Source of the DNA: Schmidtea nova
Taxonomy: Eukaryota
Length of the DNA: 64,000 bases
Direction of reading: 5' to 3'
NCBI GenBank assembly: GCA_044892505.1
Contig: CM097882.1
Span: forward strand, 440,262,001 to 440,326,000
The position numbers and the translations under genes were made by a program. The notes under the pieces were generated by a model. The model was not told where the DNA came from, ran no database searches, and was given only the letters and a program-made list of their open reading frames with translations. This document shows, piece by piece, positions 1 through 63,768 of this stretch. The stretch's first letter is position 1. Every line of letters starts with the position of its first letter.

Positions 1-3000
1 AAGCACAAAGACTAAGCAAATTGTGCAAAGATGTTGCAGAATCCCATCTTCCAGATTCGACAGTAATTAGAAATGCAGACATAGTAGATGACATCGTTGA
101 TGAAGTAACTGAGGAACGTAAAGTTGGGCTTGAAAATGGACAAAAGTTGTTATTTGATGCATTGGATAAGGATGAGTTAGACAATCTCAAAGGCAAAGAA
201 CTAGTTGAAAGTTTAGAAATAATGAAAGCATTGATTCCGAAATCCAAAGCGGGAGAGAAAGAACGGAAATTTCTAGACGACGTAATAGACGATTTGAAAA
301 AGTCTTTAAAAAGTGGATCAAAAGTGAAAATCGACAAGTCTGTTTGTGAACAATTAAAAGCTTTAGGTAAAAAGAGTGAAAAGAGATTAGTTAATTCCGA
401 TGAGGATAGCAACAAACTGCTCGAAGCAATTAGATGTTTATTTGATGAGGAAGAAGGCGAAAAAGAAAAGTTACTGAACCGGAAAGATATTGACAATTTA
501 CTGTGTGGAATAAAAGTCGCAAAAGATGCATTGAAAAATGAAATAAGTGAAGCGAAACTGATAGAGTTAGAAGAGATATTATTGAAGGAAGTCTCTGATG
601 GAAAAGATCTCATTAGACTAGAAGCGACAGTCAATGAACCTCTCATTGGTATTCTATGTGAAGCTGTCCAAATTCAATCGAGCATTCCGGATATTGCGGA
701 ACGTATAAGAAAATCTCGACAAGACGAAATTGAAAACAGTCGACGACCAATTGAAACAATCTTGAAAGAATTAGTGGAAACGTCAAAGAAGGATCAAATA
801 AAATTGAAAGGCCAAGATTTATCAAAATTGTCAAAAGCTATTGATACAATTGAAAGTAGGATTAACGAAACTCCAGACGCTGAAAGATCCAAGGAGTGGA
901 AAGCAAATAAATCTTTACTGGAATCTATTCTCCCTAAAGTACAAGAAGTCGTTGATTGCAAATCAAAAGAATTAGATCTGAACAAAGACGAAGCACAAAG
1001 ACTAAGCAAATTGTGCAAAGATGTTGCAGAATCCCATCTTCCAGATTCGACAGTAATTAGAAATGCAGACATAGTAGATGACATCGTTGATGAAGTAACT
1101 GAGGAACGTAAAGTTGGGCTTGAAAATGGACAAAAGTTGTTATTTGATGCATTGGATAAGGGTGAGTTAGACAATCTCAAAGGCAAAGAACTAGTTGAAA
1201 GTTTAGAAATAATGAAAGCATTGATTCCGAAATCCAAAGCGGGAGAGAAAGAACGGAAATTTCTAGACGACGTAATAGACGATTTGAAAAAGTCTTTAAA
1301 AAGTGGATCAAAAGTGAAAATCGACAAGTCTGTTTGTGAACAATTAAAAGCTTTAGGTAAAAAGAGTGAAAAGAGATTAGTTAATTCCGATGAGGATAGC
1401 AACAAACTGCTCGAAGCAATTAGATGTTTATTTGATGAGGAAGAAGGCGAAAAAGAAAAGTTACTGAACCGGAAAGATATTGACAATTTACTGTGTGGAA
1501 TAAAAGTCGCAAAAGATGCATTGAAAAATGAAATAAGTGAAGCGAAACTGATAGAGTTAGAAGAGATATTATTGAAGGAAGTCTCTGATGGAAAAGATCT
1601 CATTAGACTAGAAGCGACAGTCAATGAACCTCTCATTGGTATTCTATGTGAAGCTGTCCAAATTCAATCGAGCATTCCGGATATTGCGGAACGTATAAGA
1701 AAATCTCGACAAGACGAAATTGAAAACAGTCGACGACCAATTGAAACAATCTTGAAAGAATTAGTGGAAACGTCAAAGAGCGATCAAATAAAATTGAAAG
1801 GCCAAGATTTATCAAAATTGTCAAAAGCTATTGATACAATTGAAAGTAGGATTAATGAAACTCCAGACGCTGAAAGATCCAAGGAGTGGAAAGCAAATAA
1901 ATCTTTACTGGAATCTATTCTCCCTAAAGTACAAGAAGTCGTTGATTGCAAATCAAAAGAATTAGATCTGAACAAAGACGAAGCACAAAGACTAAGCAAA
2001 TTGTGCAAAGATGTTGCAGAATCCCATCTTCCAGATTCGACAGTAATTAGAAATGCAGACATAGTAGATGACATCGTTGATGAAGTAACTGAGGAACGTA
2101 AAGTTGGGCTTGAAAATGGACAAAAGTTGTTATTTGATGCATTGGATAAGGGTGAGTTAGACAATCTCAAAGGCAAAGAACTAGTTGAAAGTTTAGAAAT
2201 AATGAAAGCATTGATTCCGAAATCCAAAGCGGGAGAGAAAGAACGGAAATTTCTAGACGACGTAATAGACGATTTGAAAAAGTCTTTAAAAAGTGGATCA
2301 AAAGTGAAAATCGACAAGTCTGTTTGTGAACAATTAAAAGCTTTAGGTAAAAAGAGTGAAAAGAGATTAGTTAATTCCGATGAGGATAGCAACAAACTGC
2401 TCGAAGCAATTAGATGTTTATTTGATGAGGAAGAAGGCGAAAAAGAAAAGTTACTGAACCGGAAAGATATTGACAATTTACTGTGTGGAATAAAAGTCGC
2501 AAAAGATGCATTGAAAAATGAAATAAGTGAAGCGAAACTGATAGAGTTAGAAGAGATATTATTGAAGGAAGTCTCTGATGGAAAAGATCTCATTAGACTA
2601 GAAGCGACAGTCAATGAACCTCTCATTGGTATTCTATGTGAAGCTGTCCAAATTCAATCGAGCATTCCGGATATTGCGGAACGTATAAGAAAATCTCGAC
2701 AAGACGAAATTGAAAACAGTCGACGACCAATTGAAACAATCTTGAAAGAATTAGTGGAAACGTCAAAGAGCGATCAAATAAAATTGAAAGGCCAAGATTT
2801 ATCAAAATTGTCAAAAGCTATTGATACAATTGAAAGTAGGATTAACGAAACTCCAGACGCTGAAAGATCCAAGGAGTGGAAAGCAAATAAATCTTTACTG
2901 GAATCTATTCTCCCTAAAGTACAAGAAGTCGTTGATTGCAAATCAAAAGAATTAGATCTGAACAAAGACGAAGCACAAAGACTAAGCAAATTGTGCAAAG

Positions 3001-6000
3001 ATGTTGCAGAATCCCATCTTCCAGATTCGACAGTAATTAGAAATGCAGACATAGTAGATGACATCGTTGATGAAGTAACTGAGGAACGTAAAGTTGGGCT
3101 TGAAAATGGACAAAAGTTGTTATTTGATGCATTGGATAAGGGTGAGTTAGACAATCTCAAAGGCAAAGAACTAGTTGAAAGTTTAGAAATAATGAAAGCA
3201 TTGATTCCGAAATCCAAAGCGGGAGAGAAAGAACGGAAATTTCTAGACGACGTAATAGACGATTTGAAAAAGTCTTTAAAAAGTGGATCAAAAGTGAAAA
3301 TCGACAAGTCTGTTTGTGAACAATTAAAAGCTTTAGGTAAAAAGAGTGAAAAGAGATTAGTTAATTCCGATGAGGATAGCAACAAACTGCTCGAAGCAAT
3401 TAGATGTTTATTTGATGAGGAAGAAGGCGAAAAAGAAAAGTTACTGAACCGGAAAGATATTGACAATTTACTGTGTGGAATAAAAGTCGCAAAAGATGCA
3501 TTGAAAAATGAAATAAGTGAAGCGAAACTGATAGAGTTAGAAGAGATATTATTGAAGGAAGTCTCTGATGGAAAAGATCTCATTAGACTAGAAGCGACAG
3601 TCAATGAACCTCTCATTGGTATTCTATGTGAAGCTGTCCAAATTCAATCGAGCATTCCGGATATTGCGGAACGTATAAGAAAATCTCGACAAGACGAAAT
3701 TGAAAACAGTCGACGACCAATTGAAACAATCTTGAAAGAATTAGTGGAAACGTCAAAGAGCGATCAAATAAAATTGAAAGGCCAAGATTTATCAAAATTG
3801 TCAAAAGCTATTGATACAATTGAAAGTAGGATTAACGAAACTCCAGACGCTGAAAGATCCAAGGAGTGGAAAGCAAATAAATCTTTACTGGAATCTATTC
3901 TCCCTAAAGTACAAGAAGTCGTTGATTGCAAATCAAAAGAATTAGATCTGAACAAAGACGAAGCACAAAGACTAAGCAAATTGTGCAAAGATGTTGCAGA
4001 ATCCCATCTTCCAGATTCGACAGTAATTAGAAATGCAGACATAGTAGATGACATCGTTGATGAAGTAACTGAGGAACGTAAAGTTGGGCTTGAAAATGGA
4101 CAAAAGTTGTTATTTGATGCATTGGATAAGGGTGAGTTAGACAATCTCAAAGGCAAAGAACTAGTTGAAAGTTTAGAAATAATGAAAGCATTGATTCCGA
4201 AATCCAAAGCGGGAGAGAAAGAACGGAAATTTCTAGACGACGTAATAGACGATTTGAAAAAGTCTTTAAAAAGTGGATCAAAAGTGAAAATCGACAAGTC
4301 TGTTTGTGAACAATTAAAAGCTTTAGGTAAAAAGAGTGAAAAGAGATTAGTTAATTCCGATGAGGATAGCAACAAACTGCTCGAAGCAATTAGATGTTTA
4401 TTTGATGAGGAAGAAGGCGAAAAAGAAAAGTTACTGAACCGGAAAGATATTGACAATTTACTGTGTGGAATAAAAGTCGCAAAAGATGCATTGAAAAATG
4501 AAATAAGTGAAGCGAAACTGATAGAGTTAGAAGAGATATTATTGAAGGAAGTCTCTGATGGAAAAGATCTCATTAGACTAGAAGCGACAGTCAATGAACC
4601 TCTCATTGGTATTCTATGTGAAGCTGTCCAAATTCAATCGAGCATTCCAGATATTGCGGAACGTATAAGAAAATCTCGACAAGACGAAATTGAAAACAGT
4701 CGACGACCAATTGAAACAATCTTGAAAGAATTAGTGGAAACGTCAAAGAGCGATCAAATAAAATTGAAAGGCCAAGATTTATCAAAATTGTCAAAAGCTA
4801 TTGATACAATTGAAAGTAGGATTAACGAAACTCCAGACGCTGAAAGATCCAAGGAGTGGAAAGCAAATAAATCTTTACTGGAATCTATTCTCCCTAAAGT
4901 ACAAGAAGTCGTTGATTGCAAATCAAAAGAATTAGATCTGAACAAAGACGAAGCACAAAGACTAAGCAAATTGTGCAAAGATGTTGCAGAATCCCATCTT
5001 CCAGATTCGACAGTAATTAGAAATGCAGACATAGTAGATGACATCGTTGATGAAGTAACTGAGGAACGTAAAGTTGGGCTTGAAAATGGACAAAAGTTGT
5101 TATTTGATGCATTGGATAAGGGTGAGTTAGACAATCTCAAAGGCAAAGAACTAGTTGAAAGTTTAGAAATAATGAAAGCATTGATTCCGAAATCCAAAGC
5201 GGGAGAGAAAGAACGGAAATTTCTAGACGACGTAATAGACGATTTGAAAAAGTCTTTAAAAAGTGGATCAAAAGTGAAAATCGACAAGTCTGTTTGTGAA
5301 CAATTAAAAGCTTTAGGTAAAAAGAGTGAAAAGAGATTAGTTAATTCCGATGAGGATAGCAACAAACTGCTCGAAGCAATTAGATGTTTATTTGATGAGG
5401 AAGAAGGCGAAAAAGAAAAGTTACTGAACCGGAAAGATATTGACAATTTACTGTGTGGAATAAAAGTCGCAAAAGATGCATTGAAAAATGAAATAAGTGA
5501 AGCGAAACTGATAGAGTTAGAAGAGATATTATTGAAGGAAGTCTCTGATGGAAAAGATCTCATTAGACTAGAAGCGACAGTCAATGAACCTCTCATTGGT
5601 ATTCTATGTGAAGCTGTCCAAATTCAATCGAGCATTCCGGATATTGCGGAACGTATAAGAAAATCTCGACAAGACGAAATTGAAAACAGTCGACGACCAA
5701 TTGAAACAATCTTGAAAGAATTAGTGGAAACGTCAAAGAGCGATCAAATAAAATTGAAAGGCCAAGATTTATCAAAATTGTCAAAAGCTATTGATACAAT
5801 TGAAAGTAGGATTAACGAAACTCCAGACGCTGAAAGATCCAAGGAGTGGAAAGCAAATAAATCTTTACTGGAATCTATTCTCCCTAAAGTACAAGAAGTC
5901 GTTGATTGCAAATCAAAAGAATTAGATCTGAACAAAGACGAAGCACAAAGACTAAGCAAATTGTGCAAAGATGTTGCAGAATCCCATCTTCCAGATTCGA

Positions 6001-9000
6001 CAGTAATTAGAAATGCAGACATAGTAGATGACATCGTTGATGAAGTAACTGAGGAACGTAAAGTTGGGCTTGAAAATGGACAAAAGTTGTTATTTGATGC
6101 ATTGGATAAGGGTGAGTTAGACAATCTCAAAGGCAAAGAACTAGTTGAAAGTTTAGAAATAATGAAAGCATTGATTCCGAAATCCAAAGCGGGAGAGAAA
6201 GAACGGAAATTTCTAGACGACGTAATAGACGATTTGAAAAAGTCTTTAAAAAGTGGATCAAAAGTGAAAATCGACAAGTCTGTTTGTGAACAATTAAAAG
6301 CTTTAGGTAAAAAGAGTGAAAAGAGATTAGTTAATTCCGATGAGGATAGCAACAAACTGCTCGAAGCAATTAGATGTTTATTTGATGAGGAAGAAGGCGA
6401 AAAAGAAAAGTTACTGAACCGGAAAGATATTGACAATTTACTGTGTGGAATAAAAGTCGCAAAAGATGCATTGAAAAATGAAATAAGTGAAGCGAAACTG
6501 ATAGAGTTAGAAGAGATATTATTGAAGGAAGTCTCTGATGGAAAAGATCTCATTAGACTAGAAGCGACAGTCAATGAACCTCTCATTGGTATTCTATGTG
6601 AAGCTGTCCAAATTCAATCGAGCATTCCGGATATTGCGGAACGTATAAGAAAATCTCGACAAGACGAAATTGAAAACAGTCGACGACCAATTGAAACAAT
6701 CTTGAAAGAATTAGTGGAAACGTCAAAGAGCGATCAAATAAAATTGAAAGGCCAAGATTTATCAAAATTGTCAAAAGCTATTGATACAATTGAAAGTAGG
6801 ATTAACGAAACTCCAGACGCTGAAAGATCCAAGGAGTGGAAAGCAAATAAATCTTTACTGGAATCTATTCTCCCTAAAGTACAAGAAGTCGTTGATTGCA
6901 AATCAAAAGAATTAGATCTGAACAAAGACGAAGCACAAAGACTAAGCAAATTGTGCAAAGATGTTGCAGAATCCCATCTTCCAGATTCGACAGTAATTAG
7001 AAATGCAGACATAGTAGATGACATCGTTGATGAAGTAACTGAGGAACGTAAAGTTGGGCTTGAAAATGGACAAAAGTTGTTATTTGATGCATTGGATAAG
7101 GGTGAGTTAGACAATCTCAAAGGCAAAGAACTAGTTGAAAGTTTAGAAATAATGAAAGCATTGATTCCGAAATCCAAAGCGGGAGAGAAAGAACGGAAAT
7201 TTCTAGACGACGTAATAGACGATTTGAAAAAGTCTTTAAAAAGTGGATCAAAAGTGAAAATCGACAAGTCTGTTTGTGAACAATTAAAAGCTTTAGGTAA
7301 AAAGAGTGAAAAGAGATTAGTTAATTCCGATGAGGATAGCAACAAACTGCTCGAAGCAATTAGATGTTTATTTGATGAGGAAGAAGGCGAAAAAGAAAAG
7401 TTACTGAACCGGAAAGATATTGACAATTTACTGTGTGGAATAAAAGTCGCAAAAGATGCATTGAAAAATGAAATAAGTGAAGCGAAACTGATAGAGTTAG
7501 AAGAGATATTATTGAAGGAAGTCTCTGATGGAAAAGATCTCATTAGACTAGAAGCGACAGTCAATGAACCTCTCATTGGTATTCTATGTGAAGCTGTCCA
7601 AATTCAATCGAGCATTCCGGATATTGCGGAACGTATAAGAAAATCTCGACAAGACGAAATTGAAAACAGTCGACGACCAATTGAAACAATCTTGAAAGAA
7701 TTAGTGGAAACGTCAAAGAGCGATCAAATAAAATTGAAAGGCCAAGATTTATCAAAATTGTCAAAAGCTATTGATACAATTGAAAGTAGGATTAACGAAA
7801 CTCCAGACGCTGAAAGATCCAAGGAGTGGAAAGCAAATAAATCTTTACTGGAATCTATTCTCCCTAAAGTACAAGAAGTCGTTGATTGCAAATCAAAAGA
7901 ATTAGATCTGAACAAAGACGAAGCACAAAGACTAAGCAAATTGTGCAAAGATGTTGCAGAATCCCATCTTCCAGATTCGACAGTAATTAGAAATGCAGAC
8001 ATAGTAGATGACATCGTTGATGAAGTAACTGAGGAACGTAAAGTTGGGCTTGAAAATGGACAAAAGTTGTTATTTGATGCATTGGATAAGGGTGAGTTAG
8101 ACAATCTCAAAGGCAAAGAACTAGTTGAAAGTTTAGAAATAATGAAAGCATTGATTCCGAAATCCAAAGCGGGAGAGAAAGAACGGAAATTTCTAGACGA
8201 CGTAATAGACGATTTGAAAAAGTCTTTAAAAAGTGGATCAAAAGTGAAAATCGACAAGTCTGTTTGTGAACAATTAAAAGCTTTAGGTAAAAAGAGTGAA
8301 AAGAGATTAGTTAATTCCGATGAGGATAGCAACAAACTGCTCGAAGCAATTAGATGTTTATTTGATGAGGAAGAAGGCGAAAAAGAAAAGTTACTGAACC
8401 GGAAAGATATTGACAATTTACTGTGTGGAATAAAAGTCGCAAAAGATGCATTGAAAAATGAAATAAGTGAAGCGAAACTGATAGAGTTAGAAGAGATATT
8501 ATTGAAGGAAGTCTCTGATGGAAAAGATCTCATTAGACTAGAAGCGACAGTCAATGAACCTCTCATTGGTATTCTATGTGAAGCTGTCCAAATTCAATCG
8601 AGCATTCCGGATATTGCGGAACGTATAAGAAAATCTCGACAAGACGAAATTGAAAACAGTCGACGACCAATTGAAACAATCTTGAAAGAATTAGTGGAAA
8701 CGTCAAAGAGCGATCAAATAAAATTGAAAGGCCAAGATTTATCAAAATTGTCAAAAGCTATTGATACAATTGAAAGTAGGATTAACGAAACTCCAGACGC
8801 TGAAAGATCCAAGGAGTGGAAAGCAAATAAATCTTTACTGGAATCTATTCTCCCTAAAGTACAAGAAGTCGTTGATTGCAAATCAAAAGAATTAGATCTG
8901 AACAAAGACGAAGCACAAAGACTAAGCAAATTGTGCAAAGATGTTGCAGAATCCCATCTTCCAGATTCGACAGTAATTAGAAATGCAGACATAGTAGATG

Positions 9001-12000
9001 ACATCGTTGATGAAGTAACTGAGGAACGTAAAGTTGGGCTTGAAAATGGACAAAAGTTGTTATTTGATGCATTGGATAAGGGTGAGTTAGACAATCTCAA
9101 AGGCAAAGAACTAGTTGAAAGTTTAGAAATAATGAAAGCATTGATTCCGAAATCCAAAGCGGGAGAGAAAGAACGGAAATTTCTAGACGACGTAATAGAC
9201 GATTTGAAAAAGTCTTTAAAAAGTGGATCAAAAGTGAAAATCGACAAGTCTGTTTGTGAACAATTAAAAGCTTTAGGTAAAAAGAGTGAAAAGAGATTAG
9301 TTAATTCCGATGAGGATAGCAACAAACTGCTCGAAGCAATTAGATGTTTATTTGATGAGGAAGAAGGCGAAAAAGAAAAGTTACTGAACCGGAAAGATAT
9401 TGACAATTTACTGTGTGGAATAAAAGTCGCAAAAGATGCATTGAAAAATGAAATAAGTGAAGCGAAACTGATAGAGTTAGAAGAGATATTATTGAAGGAA
9501 GTCTCTGATGGAAAAGATCTCATTAGACTAGAAGCGACAGTCAATGAACCTCTCATTGGTATTCTATGTGAAGCTGTCCAAATTCAATCGAGCATTCCGG
9601 ATATTGCGGAACGTATAAGAAAATCTCGACAAGACGAAATTGAAAACAGTCGACGACCAATTGAAACAATCTTGAAAGAATTAGTGGAAACGTCAAAGAG
9701 CGATCAAATAAAATTGAAAGGCCAAGATTTATCAAAATTGTCAAAAGCTATTGATACAATTGAAAGTAGGATTAACGAAACTCCAGACGCTGAAAGATCC
9801 AAGGAGTGGAAAGCAAATAAATCTTTACTGGAATCTATTCTCCCTAAAGTACAAGAAGTCGTTGATTGCAAATCAAAAGAATTAGATCTGAACAAAGACG
9901 AAGCACAAAGACTAAGCAAATTGTGCAAAGATGTTGCAGAATCCCATCTTCCAGATTCGACAGTAATTAGAAATGCAGACATAGTAGATGACATCGTTGA
10001 TGAAGTAACTGAGGAACGTAAAGTTGGGCTTGAAAATGGACAAAAGTTGTTATTTGATGCATTGGATAAGGGTGAGTTAGACAATCTCAAAGGCAAAGAA
10101 CTAGTTGAAAGTTTAGAAATAATGAAAGCATTGATTCCGAAATCCAAAGCGGGAGAGAAAGAACGGAAATTTCTAGACGACGTAATAGACGATTTGAAAA
10201 AGTCTTTAAAAAGTGGATCAAAAGTGAAAATCGACAAGTCTGTTTGTGAACAATTAAAAGCTTTAGGTAAAAAGAGTGAAAAGAGATTAGTTAATTCCGA
10301 TGAGGATAGCAACAAACTGCTCGAAGCAATTAGATGTTTATTTGATGAGGAAGAAGGCGAAAAAGAAAAGTTACTGAACCGGAAAGATATTGACAATTTA
10401 CTGTGTGGAATAAAAGTCGCAAAAGATGCATTGAAAAATGAAATAAGTGAAGCGAAACTGATAGAGTTAGAAGAGATATTATTGAAGGAAGTCTCTGATG
10501 GAAAAGATCTCATTAGACTAGAAGCGACAGTCAATGAACCTCTCATTGGTATTCTATGTGAAGCTGTCCAAATTCAATCGAGCATTCCAGATATTGCGGA
10601 ACGTATAAGAAAATCTCGACAAGACGAAATTGAAAACAGTCGACGACCAATTGAAACAATCTTGAAAGAATTAGTGGAAACGTCAAAGAGCGATCAAATA
10701 AAATTGAAAGGCCAAGATTTATCAAAATTGTCAAAAGCTATTGATACAATTGAAAGTAGGATTAACGAAACTCCAGACGCTGAAAGATCCAAGGAGTGGA
10801 AAGCAAATAAATCTTTACTGGAATCTATTCTCCCTAAAGTACAAGAAGTCGTTGATTGCAAATCAAAAGAATTAGATCTGAACAAAGACGAAGCACAAAG
10901 ACTAAGCAAATTGTGCAAAGATGTTGCAGAATCCCATCTTCCAGATTCGACAGTAATTAGAAATGCAGACATAGTAGATGACATCGTTGATGAAGTAACT
11001 GAGGAACGTAAAGTTGGGCTTGAAAATGGACAAAAGTTGTTATTTGATGCATTGGATAAGGGTGAGTTAGACAATCTCAAAGGCAAAGAACTAGTTGAAA
11101 GTTTAGAAATAATGAAAGCATTGATTCCGAAATCCAAAGCGGGAGAGAAAGAACGGAAATTTCTAGACGACGTAATAGACGATTTGAAAAAGTCTTTAAA
11201 AAGTGGATCAAAAGTGAAAATCGACAAGTCTGTTTGTGAACAATTAAAAGCTTTAGGTAAAAAGAGTGAAAAGAGATTAGTTAATTCCGATGAGGATAGC
11301 AACAAACTGCTCGAAGCAATTAGATGTTTATTTGATGAGGAAGAAGGCGAAAAAGAAAAGTTACTGAACCGGAAAGATATTGACAATTTACTGTGTGGAA
11401 TAAAAGTCGCAAAAGATGCATTGAAAAATGAAATAAGTGAAGCGAAACTGATAGAGTTAGAAGAGATATTATTGAAGGAAGTCTCTGATGGAAAAGATCT
11501 CATTAGACTAGAAGCGACAGTCAATGAACCTCTCATTGGTATTCTATGTGAAGCTGTCCAAATTCAATCGAGCATTCCGGATATTGCGGAACGTATAAGA
11601 AAATCTCGACAAGACGAAATTGAAAACAGTCGACGACCAATTGAAACAATCTTGAAAGAATTAGTGGAAACGTCAAAGAGCGATCAAATAAAATTGAAAG
11701 GCCAAGATTTATCAAAATTGTCAAAAGCTATTGATACAATTGAAAGTAGGATTAACGAAACTCCAGACGCTGAAAGATCCAAGGAGTGGAAAGCAAATAA
11801 ATCTTTACTGGAATCTATTCTCCCTAAAGTACAAGAAGTCGTTGATTGCAAATCAAAAGAATTAGATCTGAACAAAGACGAAGCACAAAGACTAAGCAAA
11901 TTGTGCAAAGATGTTGCAGAATCCCATCTTCCAGATTCGACAGTAATTAGAAATGCAGACATAGTAGATGACATCGTTGATGAAGTAACTGAGGAACGTA

Positions 12001-36000: not shown

Positions 36001-39000
36001 CTTTAGGTAAAAAGAGTGAAAAGAGATTAGTTAATTCCGATGAGGATAGCAACAAACTGCTCGAAGCAATTAGATGTTTATTTGATGAGGAAGAAGGCGA
36101 AAAAGAAAAGTTACTGAACCGGAAAGATATTGACAATTTACTGTGTGGAATAAAAGTCGCAAAAGATGCATTGAAAAATGAAATAAGTGAAGCGAAACTG
36201 ATAGAGTTAGAAGAGATATTATTGAAGGAAGTCTCTGATGGAAAAGATCTCATTAGACTAGAAGCAACAGTCAATGAACCTCTCATTGGTATTCTATGTG
36301 AAGCTGTCCAAATTCAATCGAGCATTCCGGATATTGCGGAACGTATAAGAAAATCTCGACAAGACGAAATTGAAAACAGTCGACGACCAATTGAAACAAT
36401 CTTGAAAGAATTAGTGGAAACGTCAAAGAGCGATCAAATAAAATTGAAAGGCCAAGATTTATCAAAATTGTCAAAAGCTATTGATACAATTGAAAGTAGG
36501 ATTAACGAAACTCCAGACGCTGAAAGATCCAAGGAGTGGAAAGCAAATAAATCTTTACTGGAATCTATTCTCCCTAAAGTACAAGAAGTCGTTGATTGCA
36601 AATCAAAAGAATTAGATCTGAACAAAGACGAAGCACAAAGACTAAGCAAATTGTGCAAAGATGTTGCAGAATCCCATCTTCCAGATTCGACAGTAATTAG
36701 AAATGCAGACATAGTAGATGACATCGTTGATGAAGTAACTGAGGAACGTAAAGTTGGGCTTGAAAATGGACAAAAGTTGTTATTTGATGCATTGGATAAG
36801 GGTGAGTTAGACAATCTCAAAGGCAAAGAACTAGTTGAAAGTTTAGAAATAATGAAAGCATTGATTCCGAAATCCAAAGCGGGAGAGAAAGAACGGAAAT
36901 TTCTAGACGACGTAATAGACGATTTGAAAAAGTCTTTAAAAAGTGGATCAAAAGTGAAAATCGACAAGTCTGTTTGTGAACAATTAAAAGCTTTAGGTAA
37001 AAAGAGTGAAAAGAGATTAGTTAATTCCGATGAGGATAGCAACAAACTGCTCGAAGCAATTAGATGTTTATTTGATGAGGAAGAAGGCGAAAAAGAAAAG
37101 TTACTGAACCGGAAAGATATTGACAATTTACTGTGTGGAATAAAAGTCGCAAAAGATGCATTGAAAAATGAAATAAGTGAAGCGAAACTGATAGAGTTAG
37201 AAGAGATATTATTGAAGGAAGTCTCTGATGGAAAAGATCTCATTAGACTAGAAGCGACAGTCAATGAACCTCTCATTGGTATTCTATGTGAAGCTGTCCA
37301 AATTCAATCGAGCATTCCGGATATTGCGGAACGTATAAGAAAATCTCGACAAGACGAAATTGAAAACAGTCGACGACCAATTGAAACAATCTTGAAAGAA
37401 TTAGTGGAAACGTCAAAGAGCGATCAAATAAAATTGAAAGGCCAAGATTTATCAAAATTGTCAAAAGCTATTGATACAATTGAAAGTAGGATTAACGAAA
37501 CTCCAGACGCTGAAAGATCCAAGGAGTGGAAAGCAAATAAATCTTTACTGGAATCTATTCTCCCTAAAGTACAAGAAGTCGTTGATTGCAAATCAAAAGA
37601 ATTAGATCTGAACAAAGACGAAGCACAAAGACTAAGCAAATTGTGCAAAGATGTTGCAGAATCCCATCTTCCAGATTCGACAGTAATTAGAAATGCAGAC
37701 ATAGTAGATGACATCGTTGATGAAGTAACTGAGGAACGTAAAGTTGGGCTTGAAAATGGACAAAAGTTGTTATTTGATGCATTGGATAAGGGTGAGTTAG
37801 ACAATCTCAAAGGCAAAGAACTAGTTGAAAGTTTAGAAATAATGAAAGCATTGATTCCGAAATCCAAAGCGGGAGAGAAAGAACGGAAATTTCTAGACGA
37901 CGTAATAGACGATTTGAAAAAGTCTTTAAAAAGTGGATCAAAAGTGAAAATCGACAAGTCTGTTTGTGAACAATTAAAAGCTTTAGGTAAAAAGAGTGAA
38001 AAGAGATTAGTTAATTCCGATGAGGATAGCAACAAACTGCTCGAAGCAATTAGATGTTTATTTGATGAGGAAGAAGGCGAAAAAGAAAAGTTACTGAACC
38101 GGAAAGATATTGACAATTTACTGTGTGGAATAAAAGTCGCAAAAGATGCATTGAAAAATGAAATAAGTGAAGCGAAACTGATAGAGTTAGAAGAGATATT
38201 ATTGAAGGAAGTCTCTGATGGAAAAGATCTCATTAGACTAGAAGCGACAGTCAATGAACCTCTCATTGGTATTCTATGTGAAGCTGTCCAAATTCAATCG
38301 AGCATTCCGGATATTGCGGAACGTATAAGAAAATCTCGACAAGACGAAATTGAAAACAGTCGACGACCAATTGAAACAATCTTGAAAGAATTAGTGGAAA
38401 CGTCAAAGAGCGATCAAATAAAATTGAAAGGCCAAGATTTATCAAAATTGTCAAAAGCTATTGATACAATTGAAAGTAGGATTAACGAAACTCCAGACGC
38501 TGAAAGATCCAAGGAGTGGAAAGCAAATAAATCTTTACTGGAATCTATTCTCCCTAAAGTACAAGAAGTCGTTGATTGCAAATCAAAAGAATTAGATCTG
38601 AACAAAGACGAAGCACAAAGACTAAGCAAATTGTGCAAAGATGTTGCAGAATCCCATCTTCCAGATTCGACAGTAATTAGAAATGCAGACATAGTAGATG
38701 ACATCGTTGATGAAGTAACTGAGGAACGTAAAGTTGGGCTTGAAAATGGACAAAAGTTGTTATTTGATGCATTGGATAAGGGTGAGTTAGACAATCTCAA
38801 AGGCAAAGAACTAGTTGAAAGTTTAGAAATAATGAAAGCATTGATTCCGAAATCCAAAGCGGGAGAGAAAGAACGGAAATTTCTAGACGACGTAATAGAC
38901 GATTTGAAAAAGTCTTTAAAAAGTGGATCAAAAGTGAAAATCGACAAGTCTGTTTGTGAACAATTAAAAGCTTTAGGTAAAAAGAGTGAAAAGAGATTAG

Positions 39001-42000
39001 TTAATTCCGATGAGGATAGCAACAAACTGCTCGAAGCAATTAGATGTTTATTTGATGAGGAAGAAGGCGAAAAAGAAAAGTTTCTGAACCGGAAAGATAT
39101 TGACAATTTACTGTGTGGAATAAAAGTCGCAAAAGATGCATTGAAAAATGAAATAAGTGAAGCGAAACTGATAGAGTTAGAAGAGATATTATTGAAGGAA
39201 GTCTCTGATGGAAAAGATCTCATTAGACTAGAAGCGACAGTCAATGAACCTCTCATTGGTATTCTATGTGAAGCTGTCCAAATTCAATCGAGCATTCCGG
39301 ATATTGCGGAACGTATAAGAAAATCTCGACAAGACAAAATTGAAAACAGTCGACGACCAATTGAAACAATCTTGAAAGAATTAGTGGAAACGTCAAAGAG
39401 CGATCAAATAAAATTGAAAGGCCAAGATTTATCAAAATTGTCAAAAGCTATTGATACAATTGAAAGTAGGATTAACGAAACTCCAGACGCTGAAAGATCC
39501 AAGGAGTGGAAAGCAAATAAATCTTTACTGGAATCTATTCTCCCTAAAGTACAAGAAGTCGTTGATTGCAAATCAAAAGAATTAGATCTGAACAAAGACG
39601 AAGCACAAAGACTAAGCAAATTGTGCAAAGATGTTGCAGAATCCCATCTTCCAGATTCGACAGTAATTAGAAATGCAGACATAGTAGATGACATCGTTGA
39701 TGAAGTAACTGAGGAACGTAAAGTTGGGCTTGAAAATGGACAAAAGTTGTTATTTGATGCATTGGATAAGGGTGAGTTAGACAATCTCAAAGGCAAAGAA
39801 CTAGTTGAAAGTTTAGAAATAATGAAAGCATTGATTCCGAAATCCAAAGCGGGAGAGAAAGAACGGAAATTTCTAGACGACGTAATAGACGATTTGAAAA
39901 AGTCTTTAAAAAGTGGATCAAAAGTGAAAATCGACAAGTCTGTTTGTGAACAATTAAAAGCTTTAGGTAAAAAGAGTGAAAAGAGATTAGTTAATTCCGA
40001 TGAGGATAGCAACAAACTGCTCGAAGCAATTAGATGTTTATTTGATGAGGAAGAAGGCGAAAAAGAAAAGTTACTGAACCGGAAAGATATTGACAATTTA
40101 CTGTGTGGAATAAAAGTCGCAAAAGATGCATTGAAAAATGAAATAAGTGAAGCGAAACTGATAGAGTTAGAAGAGATATTATTGAAGGAAGTCTCTGATG
40201 GAAAAGATCTCATTAGACTAGAAGCGACAGTCAATGAACCTCTCATTGGTATTCTATGTGAAGCTGTCCAAATTCAATCGAGCATTCCGGATATTGCGGA
40301 ACGTATAAGAAAATCTCGACAAGACGAAATTGAAAACAGTCGACGACCAATTGAAACAATCTTGAAAGAATTAGTGGAAACGTCAAAGAGCGATCAAATA
40401 AAATTGAAAGGCCAAGATTTATCAAAATTGTCAAAAGCTATTGATACAATTGAAAGTAGGATTAACGAAACTCCAGACGCTGAAAGATCCAAGGAGTGGA
40501 AAGCAAATAAATCTTTACTGGAATCTATTCTCCCTAAAGTACAAGAAGTCGTTGATTGCAAATCAAAAGAATTAGATCTGAACAAAGACGAAGCACAAAG
40601 ACTAAGCAAATTGTGCAAAGATGTTGCAGAATCCCATCTTCCAGATTCGACAGTAATTAGAAATGCAGACATAGTAGATGACATCGTTGATGAAGTAACT
40701 GAGGAACGTAAAGTTGGGCTTGAAAATGGACAAAAGTTGTTATTTGATGCATTGGATAAGGGTGAGTTAGACAATCTCAAAGGCAAAGAACTAGTTGAAA
40801 GTTTAGAAATAATGAAAGCATTGATTCCGAAATCCAAAGCGGGAGAGAAAGAACGGAAATTTCTAGACGACGTAATAGACGATTTGAAAAAGTCTTTAAA
40901 AAGTGGATCAAAAGTGAAAATCGACAAGTCTGTTTGTGAACAATTAAAAGCTTTAGGTAAAAAGAGTGAAAAGAGATTAGTTAATTCCGATGAGGATAGC
41001 AACAAACTGCTCGAAGCAATTAGATGTTTATTTGATGAGGAAGAAGGCGAAAAAGAAAAGTTACTGAACCGGAAAGATATTGACAATTTACTGTGTGGAA
41101 TAAAAGTCGCAAAAGATGCATTGAAAAATGAAATAAGTGAAGCGAAACTGATAGAGTTAGAAGAGATATTATTGAAGGAAGTCTCTGATGGAAAAGATCT
41201 CATTAGACTAGAAGCGACAGTCAATGAACCTCTCATTGGTATTCTATGTGAAGCTGTCCAAATTCAATCGAGCATTCCGGATATTGCGGAACGTATAAGA
41301 AAATCTCGACAAGACAAAATTGAAAACAGTCGACGACCAATTGAAACAATCTTGAAAGAATTAGTGGAAACGTCAAAGAGCGATCAAATAAAATTGAAAG
41401 GCCAAGATTTATCAAAATTGTCAAAAGCTATTGATACAATTGAAAGTAGGATTAACGAAACTCCAGACGCTGAAAGATCCAAGGAGTGGAAAGCAAATAA
41501 ATCTTTACTGGAATCTATTCTCCCTAAAGTACAAGAAGTCGTTGATTGCAAATCAAAAGAATTAGATCTGAACAAAGACGAAGCACAAAGACTAAGCAAA
41601 TTGTGCAAAGATGTTGCAGAATCCCATCTTCCAGATTCGACAGTAATTAGAAATGCAGACATAGTAGATGACATCGTTGATGAAGTAACTGAGGAACGTA
41701 AAGTTGGGCTTGAAAATGGACAAAAGTTGTTATTTGATGCATTGGATAAGGGTGAGTTAGACAATCTCAAAGGCAAAGAACTAGTTGAAAGTTTAGAAAT
41801 AATGAAAGCATTGATTCCGAAATCCAAAGCGGGAGAGAAAGAACGGAAATTTCTAGACGACGTAATAGACGATTTGAAAAAGTCTTTAAAAAGTGGATCA
41901 AAAGTGAAAATCGACAAGTCTGTTTGTGAACAATTAAAAGCTTTAGGTAAAAAGAGTGAAAAGAGATTAGTTAATTCCGATGAGGATAGCAACAAACTGC

Positions 42001-42531
42001 TCGAAGCAATTAGATGTTTATTTGATGAGGAAGAAGGCGAAAAAGAAAAGTTACTGAACCGGAAAGATATTGACAATTTACTGTGTGGAATAAAAGTCGC
42101 AAAAGATGAATTGAAAAATGAAATAAGTGAAGCGAAACTGATAGAGTTAGAAGAGATATTATTGAAGGAAGTCTCTGATGGAAAAGATCTCATTAGACTA
42201 GAAGCGACAGTCAATGAACCTCTCATTGGTATTCTATGTGAAGCTGTCCAAATTCAATCGAGCATTCCGGATATTGCGGAACGTATAAGAAAATCTCGAC
42301 AAGACGAAATTGAAAACAGTCGACGACCAATTGAAACAATCTTGAAAGAATTAGTGGAAACGTCAAAGAGCGATCAAATAAAATTGAAAGGCCAAGATTT
42401 ATCAAAATTGTCAAAAGCTATTGATACAATTGAAAGTAGGATTAACGAAACTCCAGACGCTGAAAGATCCAAGGAGTGGAAAGCAAATAAATCTTTACTG
42501 GAATCTATTCTCCCTAAAGTACAAGAAGTCG
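1..42531 (+). repeat. 990-bp tandem repeat, about 43 copies (42 full plus 951 bp), near-identical, in frame (330 codons)
   Basis: The unit start aagcacaaagactaagc recurs at 1+990n up to 41,581. The only differences I found are at unit offsets 172, 473, 529, 626, 689, 726, 790-791 and 866. Confidence 0.99.
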
Positions 42532-42690
42532 GTAATTCTAATATAAAAGAATTAATTTTAAAGAAAGATATTGCTCAAAGTATATCCAATTTGATTTATG
42601 ATAGTTCTTCAATCGCAAAAAACGACATGTTAGATTCAAACTCGGAGTTATGTTATCCGTCGGAAGAAGTTATTGTTCCTCATCATACAA
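3..42690 (+). CDS. 5'-partial giant coding exon (>14,229 codons) of an unrecognised helical tandem-repeat protein (330-aa repeats)
   Basis: No stop from position 3 (gca caa aga cta agc aaa ttg = AQRLSKL) to beyond 42,690. The frame is open at the window edge, so the TTG at 21 is not a real start. The exon ends at CATACAA|GTATTT, and splicing there restores a long downstream frame. Confidence 0.85.
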
Positions 42691-42727
42691 GTATTTTATT
42701 TTATTGTTTTTCTTTATTTTTGTATAG
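42691..42727 (+). other. 37-nt GT-AG intron (phase 1)
   Basis: GTATTT...TTGTATAG, very T-rich. Removing it gives the open frame HHT-IPTHAFDPK. Confidence 0.75.
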
Positions 42728-42826
42728 TTCCTACCCACGCTTTTGATCCAAAATTCTTCAATCAGAGTTCTTCAGTTGATATTTCTGATATTTCTCCTGA
42801 TAAATATGATTTTGTGAACCCAATTA
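42728..42826 (+). CDS. Exon of the giant protein gene (IPTHAFDPKFFNQSSSVDISDISPDKYDFVNPI)
   Basis: Open in the phase inherited from the giant exon; bounded by TAG acceptor and GTTAGT donor; 99 nt. Confidence 0.75.
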
Positions 42827-42866
42827 GTTAGTTTTATAATTTTTCTCTTCTATTATCTCAATTTAG
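42827..42866 (+). other. 40-nt GT-AG intron (phase 1)
   Basis: GTTAGT...ATTTAG; carries an in-frame TAG that splicing removes. Confidence 0.75.
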
Positions 42867-42914
42867 CTAGCCATAAAAATGCCTTCTCAGCAATTTCTCC
42901 TCCATGTTCGACAA
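42867..42914 (+). CDS. 48-nt exon of the giant protein gene (TSHKNAFSAISPPCST)
   Basis: Open, phase 1 at both ends, between TTTAG and GTATAT. Confidence 0.7.
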
Positions 42915-42953
42915 GTATATTTTTTAGTATAGTTTATCTAAATATCAATCTAG
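42915..42953 (+). other. 39-nt GT-AG intron (phase 1)
   Basis: GTATAT...AATCTAG; removing it lands exactly in the frame of ORF 42959-43705. Confidence 0.75.
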
Positions 42954-43599
42954 ATGATGTGATCTCTCATTCTGACGATCTGGCTGATGATATTTCCTTC
43001 TCATTTCAATCGCAATGTGAACCATCATTTCCTGACGCCGATAAAAGTTCTGAAATTGGTTATTATGCTGATTCTAACGTTTTTTCTAATTTTACTTCTT
43101 CTGATCTTCCTTTATTTCAACCTTCAAATTATCAGTATTTGGATGAAGAGTCTAATTTAAATTTGGATTCAATGAAGCCGTCGAATTGGATGCATATATT
43201 TGAAATGGAATTGAAATATTTGGAAGGTCAAACTGACGCTTTCTCGTCAGCAGTTGATAAAAAGCAAGATCTTTTTGAAATTGGGTGTGATCATTTTATT
43301 GATGATGACTCCCTTCAACATGTTACGGAAAGAGCTAGTTTGAGGCTTAACACTCTTGAGAGTCATTGCAGTAATTTTGTCTCTAGTCGTAGATCTTCTT
43401 TCGCAACAAGCTCCCCGTTAAGAATCAATTCTCCTATTCCAGATTCTGATACTCCATCACAACTTTTTCATCTTCTTGAGTTATTAAAAAAGCAAAATGA
43501 AGTTATTTTAAGTTCAGCATCTCTTTCTCGTGATGATATTGATAGGCAGTTACACGAACATCGCCGTCGCATTTTAGATGTCAGAAATCGGCTTACTAA
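42954..43599 (+). CDS. Exon encoding a Ser/Asp-rich region and a coiled-coil-like segment (...QLFHLLELLKKQNE...HRRRILDVRNRLTK)
   Basis: Matches ORF 42959..43705 up to the point where its translation turns into intron-like F/I/N text. Confidence 0.8.
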
Positions 43600-43640
43600 G
43601 TTTTTTATTAATTCATTTATATTTAATTATTTGCATTTAG
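43600..43640 (+). other. 41-nt GT-AG intron (phase 2)
   Basis: GTTTTT...GCATTTAG. The donor is weak, but length and AT richness match the neighbouring introns and the frame continues. Confidence 0.6.
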
Positions 43641-43701
43641 ATATAAATCCAAATCTTCTTTTTCGACTGAGAAAATTTCATACGATAAGTCTTATGCTGA
43701 T
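43641..43701 (+). CDS. Exon (YKSKSSFSTEKISYDKSYAD)
   Basis: Open after splicing and ends at a GTGAGA donor (phase 0). If that donor is not used, the frame stops at 43,714-43,716. Confidence 0.6.
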
Positions 43702-44048
43702 GTGAGATATTTTTAATTTGTGCTTTGCAATTTTATATTTTAATATTGTAAATTTCTTTATTTTACATGTCGTGCAAATGTGCAAATGTGCAATTATGAT
43801 TGCTATCCTTTTGTCTGATTCGTTAGTTGACGGTGCTCATTTAATGTGAATCTGGCTGTAATAATAATATTAAACATATAATCCCACTCCGTCGTCCTGT
43901 AAATATTTAATTTTACCTAATTTTAGTTAATATCATACTATTAAAAATAAGTAGTATAATTATAATAATTATAATTTCTTCCCAAATTATTTAATGTCAT
44001 TGTGTTGTCCATCCGCCTTTTCCTAAATTTACTGCTGATAATTATCAG

Positions 44049-44811
44049 CAGTGGCTTAACTGTGGTTGGTGTCACCCAGTGCGGTAAACTCTTGGTGTCA
44101 CCCCTCTAGAATTTCACCATGGTCTTTTTCCAAGCTTTCCTGTACCATATATAATCGCATATAGTAATGTTTGTAAAATAAGTGAAAAAAGTTAATAAGG
44201 ACATAAAAAAGAAAACAAATTGAACAATATAACTTTAATACTTCAGCTAAAACATAAATAAAGAACTTCGACAAACTCGGACAAAGTTAAATTTGTGTTA
44301 TTTAACATTAAAATTTCTGTTATTTAAAAGTCTCCCTTCCTGGTCTTCAAAGCTGCAAACCTTTCAATCACATCATCAAAATCAATATCTTTCACCATAT
44401 CACTTTCAATTGGTAATATATCTAGATCAGAAAGTCTTGACTCTCCCATGCTTAATCGCAAATAGTTATTTATAAGTTTCAGTTTTGAAAAGCTCCTGTT
44501 ACATGAAGCCACAGACACGCAGATCGTAAGAAATTGTTGTAGGCTTAGTGAGAGTATTGGGAGAGATTCAAGGAAATCCCAGACAACTATTCTACTCTGA
44601 CTCTGAGGCTTCGAGCAGCTCTGAGTCTTATTCATTTAAGCAGCAGATGCTCTGCATGGTATCACCCTGTGACTGATCATGTATTTAACAATGAACGGTT
44701 ATGAAACCCGACTAGACAGAGCTATGTCTGCTTTTTCAAATTTGCAACTTTTTTATTTTGGTGTCACCCGGTGCGGCCCGCATCCCCCGCACCCCCCTAT
44801 TGACGCCCCTA
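44049..44811 (-). mobile_element. Internally deleted (non-autonomous) hAT DNA transposon
   Basis: ATTATCAG directly flanks both ends (44041-44048 and 44812-44819), the 8-bp TSD length typical of hAT. Imperfect TIRs: CAGTGGCTTAACTG versus the right-end reverse complement TAGGGGCGTCAATA. Three TTGGTGTCACCC subterminal motifs at 44066, 44092 and 44758. Contains a transposase C-terminal fragment. Confidence 0.85.
44324..44635 (-). pseudogene. hAT transposase C-terminal dimerisation-domain fragment
   Basis: VSVASCNRSFSKLKLINNYLRLSMGESRLSDLDILPIE matches the hAT dimerisation motif (S-x-A-S-x-E-R-S-F-S-K-L-K-L-I-K-x-Y-L-R-S-x-M...R-L-x-x-L). Confidence 0.85.
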
Positions 44812-46320
44812 ATTATCAGTATATAAAATTTGATATATTATAAAAAAATTTCAAATATCGTTGTGGATATGAAAACAATGAGTGTAAAATTTACTTGATT
44901 TGTTCATAACACGTGAAATTGAAAGAAACCTTTTTTTCATGTATTTAATACTAAATAGATTCAAAAAGTTACGACAGTGATTTGTCGAGCTTTCTTTATA
45001 ACTGATTGTTTTTCTTTGATTAATATTTTTTGGTTCTGGTATTAAAGATTTTAATATATGAATTCATCTATGTAAATTTTGCTTATTGAAAAATAAATTG
45101 TATTTATTGTATTTATCTTTTGTTTCTAATTGGTTTCTTGCTTTATTGCCAGACTTAGTAACTTTATATAGAACTTCATTATGAAAATGTGAATATAGTT
45201 GTGAAAAATTGTTTTTAGGAAAATACCGATAACTTTTCTTCATGCATCAAAAAGTTAATCCAAAGATAAAAAATATTTCTGATAACTTCTGTTTATTTTT
45301 ATATTAAAATTTTCTCAAAATATAGAAATTTCTTTCATTTTTCCAGAAATTACGCCATTTCTATATTCAATCTGCTACAAACAGAGAATCACGTGATTTT
45401 TGTGTGTAAGCTGGACAGGTTAAAATTGATACGGTTGAATTTAATTGCATTCGTCTATCTAACTGTCCAGTGCATTTAGTTGCATGTTACAAATATTTAA
45501 GGGTGTTCGCCTTGAATGTTCTACGCATTTCTCTGCTTATAGCAGATTCTTATTAGAAATAAAGTTTCTGATATTGTTATAAAATAAATATCCACTGACA
45601 CTACAAATTGTAACAGCTGATTTGTTTCATTTTTTAACTCTTTTTTTAATTCTTTTAACTTCCAATTTCTGTTTGTTTTCTTGTCAAACTTAGGATCGAT
45701 TTTTAACCCACTTCCCGATATCCAATCGATCTGAAAATTTGCGAGCAGACTCGTGGTGGCCCACAAATTATTCCATTGAAAAATTTTGAAGCAATGTGAT
45801 TTTTCAATTTACTGTTGCCAAGAAACTACCAAACAACGAAACAACAATAAAATTAACTGAGAACATGAGAAAAAGAAAGAGTTACATTAAAAACTTGTTT
45901 TTATGGGTTCCTTTTTTATAAATTTTTTAGTGCCTATTTGCTCTCATTCTACTATTATTCATTGTATGAATATTTAAAAGATTTTTATTTTTTAATATTT
46001 CTAAAGTGGTTTCTTTCGTATTAAAACTAAGTAATTTTACCAGTTTTTAATAAAAGTAATAATAATAAAAAATGATTGTTTCACGGTAGCAGCCTTAATT
46101 AAATATTAAATAATTAACAAATAACAATATAAGCTTTTGCTGCAAAGTTTTATTGGGTTAAAATTTTTGATTATCAATTAATCCTTGCCAATTTTGAAAA
46201 TTGATAAGGATTTTTTGATAGCCGAAATTTGCGATCAATAAAACTTTACAGCATAGGCTTACCTTGTTATTTATTTAATAAATAATCATAATAAATAAAT
46301 AATAATAAATGTGTTTGTAG

Positions 46321-46388
46321 AATAAACAGCCAGCCTCAATTTGGCGAAAATTCAAAGAAAGGCACATTAACCCAACTCAGACATTTAG
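46321..46388 (+). CDS. Penultimate exon (NKQPASIWRKFKERHINPTQTFR)
   Basis: 68 nt, open, enters in phase 0 and exits in phase 2, which is what the flanking exons require. Confidence 0.6.
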
Positions 46389-46435
46389 GTGATAAACGAT
46401 TTAATTACTTGCTTTAATTATAGTATTTATTTCAG
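46389..46435 (+). other. 47-nt GT-AG intron (phase 2)
   Basis: GTGATA...TTTCAG. Confidence 0.6.
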
Positions 46436-46586
46436 GTCTTTATCACAAAGAACAAATTTATCTCCGTCACAAAGCACTCAATCGTTATACAGAAGACCTA
46501 ATTTTGATATTCAAAAATCCAAAATATTATTAGAAGAAACTGCGAAAATCATAAGGAATTCTAGAGATAAATTAAATCAGAAATAA
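46436..46586 (+). CDS. Terminal coding exon (SLSQRTNLSPSQSTQSLYRRPNFDIQKSKILLEETAKIIRNSRDKLNQK-stop)
   Basis: 3' part of ORF 46389..46586 after a strong TTTCAG acceptor; ends in TAA. Confidence 0.65.
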
Positions 46587-46587
46587 A
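46582..46587 (+). promoter_or_regulatory. Possible polyadenylation signal AATAAA overlapping the stop codon
   Basis: Hexamer present, but it is common by chance in AT-rich DNA. Confidence 0.2.
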
Positions 46588-63261: not shown

Positions 63262-63768
63262 GGGTATCACTCGAAAGGTCTTTGAAAGGTCTATACAATG
63301 GTCATACTCTCGAAGGTTTATGGAGGGTCCTTAACCTTCAAAGGGTCAAAAACCTTCAAATTTTTTCAATCCTTACAAGTTATATATCATTCGAAAAGTA
63401 GTTGAGAGGTACGTATGATGGTCATACCTTCGAAGGTGTATAATGTGTGCTCAACCTTCAAAGGGTGCAAAATCTTCAAATTTCTTCAAACTTTATAATA
63501 TGTATATCAAACAAAAGGTAATTTAGAGGTGTACATGATGGTCATTCCCTCGAAGGTCCATTGTGGGTGCTCAACCCTCAAAGAGTCTGAAACCTTCAAA
63601 TCTTTTCAAACTTTATAATATACATATCATTCAAAAGGACTTTTGATGGTGAGTTTGAAGGTCATACTCTTGAAGGGTCCAAGGTTCAAAATATTTAAAA
63701 CCTTAAAAATATGTACATCAAAACAAAAGGTAATTGAAGGGTGGGTATGATGGTCATACCCTTGAAGA
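63262..63768. repeat. 120-bp diverged tandem repeat (about 4 copies) with a palindromic (CC)TTCGAAGG core
   Basis: GGTCAT recurs at 63300, 63420, 63540 and 63660 (exact 120-bp period) and at 63752 after a truncated unit. Perfect ACCTTCGAAGGT at 63426-63437. Confidence 0.9.

Follow-up and report, generated by a model that had tools for sequence, protein, structure and literature searches.

What kind of product, if any, is encoded by a reading frame that runs without a stop through more than 42 kilobases (kb) of near-identical repeats? This question is raised by a stretch of 64,000 nucleotides (nt) from contig CM097882.1 of Schmidtea nova (assembly GCA_044892505.1, positions 440,262,001 to 440,326,000), which was analysed at its full length and is referred to here as the window. 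Our preferred answer, to which we assign a probability of roughly 0.55, is that the frame belongs to a genuine giant gene whose product would be a very long, acidic, modular helical rod serving as a cytoplasmic spacer or tether. The window would then contain the 3' portion of a gene that codes for protein in an AT-rich animal. The core of this gene would consist of at least 43 head-to-tail modules of 330 residues, which are acidic, have a high content of Lys, Glu, Asp and Leu, and are all-helical by prediction. Upstream of the window the array continues, and the N-terminus of the protein lies there as well. Frame +3 was open from base 3 over 14,247 codons and met its first stop at 42,744-42,746, in agreement with a previous sequence-only reading of this DNA, which had described a stop-free frame of more than 14,200 codons entering from upstream.

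A direct period test of this region gave an exact period of 990 base pairs (bp), or 330 codons per unit, with a self-match of 99.9%. Forty-two full copies of the unit occupy positions 1 to 41,582 of the forward strand, in frame from base 3 and with neighbouring copies 99.6-100% identical to each other. They are followed by a partial 43rd copy (41,583-42,530, forward strand), which departs from the consensus at position 42,531. The consensus sequence was matched exactly by 30 of the 42 full copies, while the remaining 12 carried 1-3 substitutions each. Among the variants, E242K was found in 7 copies and L157F in a single copy; of the synonymous changes, two kinds occurred in 2 copies apiece and a third kind in 1 copy. 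The most diverged copies were the two visible edge copies, namely copy 1 with 3 changed bases and copy 43 with the replacement A176E. This is the pattern expected for the ends of a homogenised array, and the 5' edge of the array may therefore sit not far upstream of the window. The longest stretch free of markers measured 8 units (7.9 kb), and the shared markers were irregularly spread, so that the order of the copies could in principle be worked out from accurate long reads. The whole thus looks like a real array that such reads can resolve rather than like a polishing artefact. The favoured explanation for the similarity of the copies is homogenisation by unequal exchange and gene conversion, which would be recent or still continuing. 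Base composition was uniform over positions 1-42,000, with a guanine plus cytosine (GC) content of 0.35 and a strong purine skew (GC skew +0.24, AT skew +0.27), and changed abruptly beyond. Tandem Repeats Finder missed the 990-bp array because the longest period it reports is 500.

The coding character of the unit was evident from several measures. Given the base composition of the unit itself, all 330 codons of one unit would be open by accident with a probability of about 4.5e-13 per frame; of 2,000 shuffled units, not one was open. None of the other five frames of the unit was open right through. The longest run among them, an antisense run of 289 codons (for example at 1983-2972 on the minus strand), is closed across units and probably reflects the purine richness of the sense strand. 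The composition of the codon positions was coding-like as well, with G making up 37% at position 1 versus 13-15% at positions 2 and 3. However large the array may be, these figures have to be read per unit: with one unit open, a period of 990 (a multiple of 3) and near-identical copies, the whole array is open by construction, and its 42.7 kb therefore carry the evidence of one unit and not of 43 independent tests.

Evidence of a different kind came from the region beyond the array. That the frame of the array passes without a break to non-repeat codons and from there to phase-matched exons counts for a real gene. An independent splice model yielded a coding sequence of 43,761 nt within the window, corresponding to 14,586 amino acids (aa) and a TAA stop at 46,584-46,586, on seven predicted exons. 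It reproduced exactly what the sequence-only reading had proposed, that is, six further exons with fitting phases ending at a TAA, and 14,586 aa. All six predicted introns are of the GT..AG type and measure, in order, 37, 40, 39, 41, 2,619 and 47 nt; the five short ones (37-47 nt) have a T content of 47-70%. All predicted exons lie on the forward strand. The window part of exon 1 (3-42690) comprises 14,229 codons and 1 base, including 53 non-repeat codons after the array, and ends at a phase-1 donor (GTATTT) at 42,691. An alternative donor of the same phase lies at 42,532, so that these 53 residues of the model are uncertain. Predicted exon 2 (42728-42826, 99 nt) is preceded by the 37-nt intron, which is 70% T, and the 40-nt intron is followed by predicted exon 3 (42867-42914, 48 nt). 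The next intron (42915-42953, 39 nt) is itself in frame and stop-free, and its retention would therefore leave the frame intact. Predicted exon 4 (42954-43599, 646 nt) encodes an acidic, Ser/Asp-rich stretch and then a helical region. Predicted exon 5 (43641-43701, 61 nt) follows a 41-nt phase-2 intron. The large predicted intron 5 (43702-46320, 2,619 nt) precedes predicted exon 6 (46321-46388, 68 nt), which was placed by phase fit only, and the predicted last exon (46436-46586). An AATAAA motif at 46,582-46,587 overlaps the stop codon, and no further exon-like open reading frames (ORFs) were found downstream of the stop.

We also screened the unit itself for introns of the small kind predicted in the tail. 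Mini-introns inside the unit were rejected, as no GT..AG candidate in the range of 30-69 nt exceeded 40% T, and the T content of any 37-nt window within the unit peaked at 38%. On sequence grounds the array is therefore a single exon, and it appears to be read, probably without interruption, as one exon of at least 42.7 kb. This exon would be joined to the six short exons to give a protein with a non-repeat tail.

The predicted tail consists of 396 non-repeat residues. It contains a helical motif that is conserved and ends in a basic stretch rich in Ser, Lys and Arg. Among 5.8 billion proteins, exon 4 had exactly one relative (P0001), with 37% identity and an expect value (E) of 3e-21 in the library search and 3e-27 in the pairwise comparison. 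P0001 is encoded on a Logan contig of 1,044 bp (L001) from run SRR33002330, and the motif WMxIFEMELKYLEGQTDA is conserved between the two. L001 represents unspliced DNA or RNA from another organism (GC content 0.39) and is open across three exons once its own introns of 43 and 45 nt are removed (region 208-932). Common to L001 and the window are a phase-2 intron after RL(T/S), which corresponds to the intron between predicted exons 4 and 5, an upstream mini-exon of the same phases, which corresponds to predicted exon 3, and an architecture of tiny introns. The relative together with the shared intron position and phases indicated that the tail is conserved coding sequence with a conserved structure. 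Beyond P0001 no relatives of the tail were found by profile search or in metagenome contigs, PDB or Pfam, and the best score in the ESM Atlas was 0.67. No exact match to the unspliced ORF of exon 4 turned up in public contigs, which means little, as the start residue of a gene call would differ. An AlphaFold2 model of the tail showed a disordered acidic start and then long helices, with a mean predicted local distance difference test (pLDDT) score of 48.4. Neither a transmembrane span nor a KASH-like end was seen in the tail, where the highest Kyte-Doolittle mean over 19 residues was 0.5; there was no Pfam match in the tail exons scanned, and no Cys-rich or known extracellular domain by Pfam. 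A role in attachment or regulation is probable for the conserved tail. A search of the literature turned up no publication dealing with this gene or with run SRR33002330.

The 330-residue unit is dominated by Lys (13.9%), Leu (13.3%), Glu (13.0%), Asp (9.4%) and Ile (8.5%). Charged residues account for 41% and give a net charge of -13, whereas Ser, Thr and Pro together make up 12% and Cys 1.8%; no hydrophobic or transmembrane-like span was found in the unit. AlphaFold2 modelled two units as helices only, about 13 per unit with short breaks, but with a pLDDT of 50.7. A Foldseek search of PDB with the unit model gave a best E of 0.25 and TM-scores of about 0.1. These checks, which the sequence-only reading had suggested, returned an all-helical prediction and say nothing on the fold, given the low pLDDT and the blank Foldseek result. 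Internal sub-repeats, whether spectrin-like (3 x 110 aa) or shorter (6 x 55 aa), were considered and rejected, as no signal above that of shuffled controls emerged from self-BLAST, a windowed dot-plot or an ungapped circular scan.

Homology searches with the unit were blank in Pfam, in PDB sequences, among proteins of 180-577 aa in the library of 5.8 billion and in the ESM Atlas (best score 0.61), and likewise in viral contigs, prokaryotic genomes and JGI metagenome contigs. A HMMER search against 1.84 billion representative proteins of any length returned one relative of the unit (P0002, E 1.4e-5). It aligned to unit residues 59-183 without gaps over 125 residues, 32% of them identical (pairwise E 7e-14). 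P0002 is an ORF of 524 aa at 427-2001 of a 2,071-bp contig (L002) from JGI metagenome 3300013315. It has a Pao/BEL-protease-like start and an integrase-like end, no reverse transcriptase or RNase H, and about 300 unrelated residues in between, the 125-residue stretch included. The Pao/BEL assignment derives from Atlas feature hits at 0.74 and from a sub-threshold aspartyl-protease match in the upstream ORF only, and a Pao/BEL-type retroelement ORF is thus a lead and not a finding. P0002 may be part of a non-autonomous retroelement that carries captured host sequence. The likeness to the unit is confined to the 125-residue stretch, which occurs once in P0002, between the protease-like and integrase-like ends, whereas the window unit is without retroelement domains: Pfam detected no protease, reverse transcriptase, RNase H, integrase or gag domain in it, there was no similarity to long terminal repeats (LTRs), and the protease-like and integrase-like parts of P0002 had no match within the window. 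Taken together the searches supported the view that the 330-residue module belongs to no described family. The sequence-only reading had found the repeat unlike Ig/Fn3, mucin or AHNAK repeats and had not recognised it, and no strong match to a described family emerged from Pfam, PDB, the ESM Atlas or the protein libraries.

Giant tandem-repeat proteins as such are a known kind, and the locus can be compared with several of them. The closest analogue is ANC-1 of Caenorhabditis elegans, the orthologue of nesprin-1/2, which contains six repeats, each 903 residues long, that are nearly 100% identical at the nucleotide level, predicted to be highly helical and without spectrin signature (PMC8139857). 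The ANC-1 repeats are needed for organelle anchorage (PMC8139857). Both proteins would have a giant core of near-identical long helical repeats, in the present case at least 43 units of 330 residues that are helical by prediction and have no Pfam match. The two differ in that there is no sequence similarity between them, that the tail in the window is without a transmembrane span or KASH peptide, that the copies are seven times more numerous here, and that the array is apparently a single exon. The CH domains of ANC-1 and the nesprins would sit at the N-terminus, upstream of the window. Spectrin repeats (PF00435) were not detected in two units at E up to 1, nor was a periodicity of about 106-110 aa, and the features of plakins and spectraplakins (plectin repeats, plakin domain, GAR domain) had no Pfam match in unit or tail.

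The giant repeat exons of human genes, such as AHNAK, MUC16 and TTN exon 363, are about 17-22 kb long. The locus resembles these in that tandem repeats make up a coding exon of very large size, whereas its unit of 330 helical residues is neither the 128-aa AHNAK repeat nor Ig/Fn3 nor a mucin Pro/Thr/Ser-rich or SEA module, and has no Pfam match. Units of about 128 aa as in AHNAK were not found, and there was no internal sub-repeat in the 330-aa unit. The exon described here would further measure at least 42.7 kb with copies about 99.9% identical, while the human repeats are diverged. Mucins and secreted glue proteins combine Pro/Thr/Ser-rich or Cys-rich repeats with a signal peptide, and the composition of the unit does not fit them. 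By every feature that could be compared, the gene thus appears to lie outside the nesprin, plakin, AHNAK and mucin families. The sequence-only reading had also put the exon, still incomplete, at about twice the size of the largest human coding exons, a comparison that is fair for human exons only: among planarians, annotations of Schmidtea already include transcripts of 77-94 kb (PMC11410931).

How firmly the array can be regarded as part of a working gene depends on what is made of its extreme uniformity. Near-identical copies have had too little time to decay, whether or not the array is of use, and with 3 synonymous and about 5 non-synonymous events the variants within the array are no evidence for or against selection. 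These points weigh against our interpretation, as do the low confidence of both structure models (units and tail) and the lack of an orthologue of the unit among the 1.84 billion representative proteins. The same uniformity, with 30 of 42 copies identical and the others 1-3 bases off, would also suit a real gene in which the array is a very recent and possibly polymorphic or assembly-uncertain expansion, so that the normal protein would have far fewer residues, and an array of 43 or more copies would be a length variant instead of a selected design. The single 125-aa stretch as the only relative of the unit outside this genome is consistent with such an expansion, and the short contig that carries the sole tail relative is silent on the presence of an array there. 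We consider this unlikely, as the scattered shared markers and the diverged end copies have the look of a homogenised, established array. It would be more radical to suppose that the array is non-functional, that is, a satellite-like amplification of a once-coding and possibly retroelement-borne fragment which is open through its youth, with a fortuitous link to the tail or in a dead gene. The only relative of the unit does lie in an ORF with Pao/BEL protease- and integrase-like ends, and retroelement gag remnants and a hAT fragment are found nearby (see below). A mere satellite would, however, hardly continue in frame through 53 non-repeat codons and four tiny phase-matched introns into an exon conserved in another species, and the unit is without LTR, pol or gag similarity and has a clear coding composition at its codon positions; we regard a non-functional array as very doubtful.

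Where the product acts is a separate matter. The sequence-only reading had proposed a giant intracellular structural or spacer filament of an undescribed family, of which the 3' part of a giant coding gene and the lack of a known family were borne out, whereas intracellular location, structural role and filament nature are conjecture. The N-terminus, and with it any signal peptide, lies upstream of the window, and a secreted product such as a gland, mucus, adhesive or matrix protein is therefore compatible with what the window contains. This also counts against a cytoplasmic rod. A secreted product is nevertheless quite unlikely in our view, as the unit is not mucin- or glue-like in its content of Ser, Thr, Pro and Cys, carries a strong net negative charge, is rich in Leu, Ile, Lys and Glu and predicted to be helical throughout, and is followed by a tail with no Cys-rich or known extracellular domain. 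Composition and the analogy to ANC-1 rather suggest the cytoplasmic spacer or tether named at the outset, the length of which would be set by copy number and which would act like ANC-1 or AHNAK and not as an enzyme or mucin. Public sequence data added the following. In four public runs, all from one organism, 90-95% of sampled 31-letter words of the region 41,600-43,620 were present, which speaks for the giant gene. Fully spliced RNA would be expected to contain at most 88.6% of these words, versus the observed fractions of 0.90-0.95, and unspliced sequence (DNA or pre-mRNA) must therefore be present in the best runs. The kind of these four runs is only a guess, and they may represent the assembly's own sample; these points count on the other side.

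What is new about the locus is the combination of a module without family and at least 43 near-perfect copies of 990 bp in apparently one exon. If the giant gene is transcribed and translated as modelled, its product would exceed 14,586 residues once the N-terminal remainder is counted, and would be encoded by one exon of 42.7 kb or more and built on a module without known relatives. The gene would then offer a natural example in which copy number fixes the length of a protein, similar to ANC-1 but with a sevenfold higher repetition. Such a case would bear on the stability and translation of near-perfect coding repeats as well as on the role of giant rods in flatworm cells. For annotation and assembly it is relevant that genes of this type collapse in short-read data and escape ordinary gene finders. 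A much more far-reaching idea is that a family of giant helical spacers, restricted to flatworms, begins with this module, and that the module shares ancestry with one inside Pao-type retroelements. A host gene would have captured, or donated, a transposon-borne sequence, whose amplification led to a translated rod of more than 14,600 aa from one of the longest animal coding exons. We mention this as a speculation that we hold to be highly improbable.

The surroundings of the gene model contain traces of mobile elements. Predicted intron 5 hosts, on the minus strand, a fragment of the C-terminal dimerisation region of a hAT transposase (44327-44635), which matched Pfam PF05699 (Dimer_Tnp_hAT) with an E of 2.4e-7, above the cut-off. 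Motifs resembling GGTGTCACCC(A/G)GTGCGG at about 44,070 and 44,760 flank this fragment and may be the ends of the element. Further downstream, between 51200 and 53900 on the minus strand, several Lys/Glu/Asn-rich ORFs with CCHC zinc knuckles were found (PF00098, E 1.2e-4 for 51509-51784), which look like decayed gag genes of retroelements. The strong negative AT skew at 50-57 kb is explained by these gag-like minus-strand ORFs. Close to the end of the window, positions 63298-63681 are occupied by a tandem repeat of 120 bp with 3.2 copies and a match of 76%.

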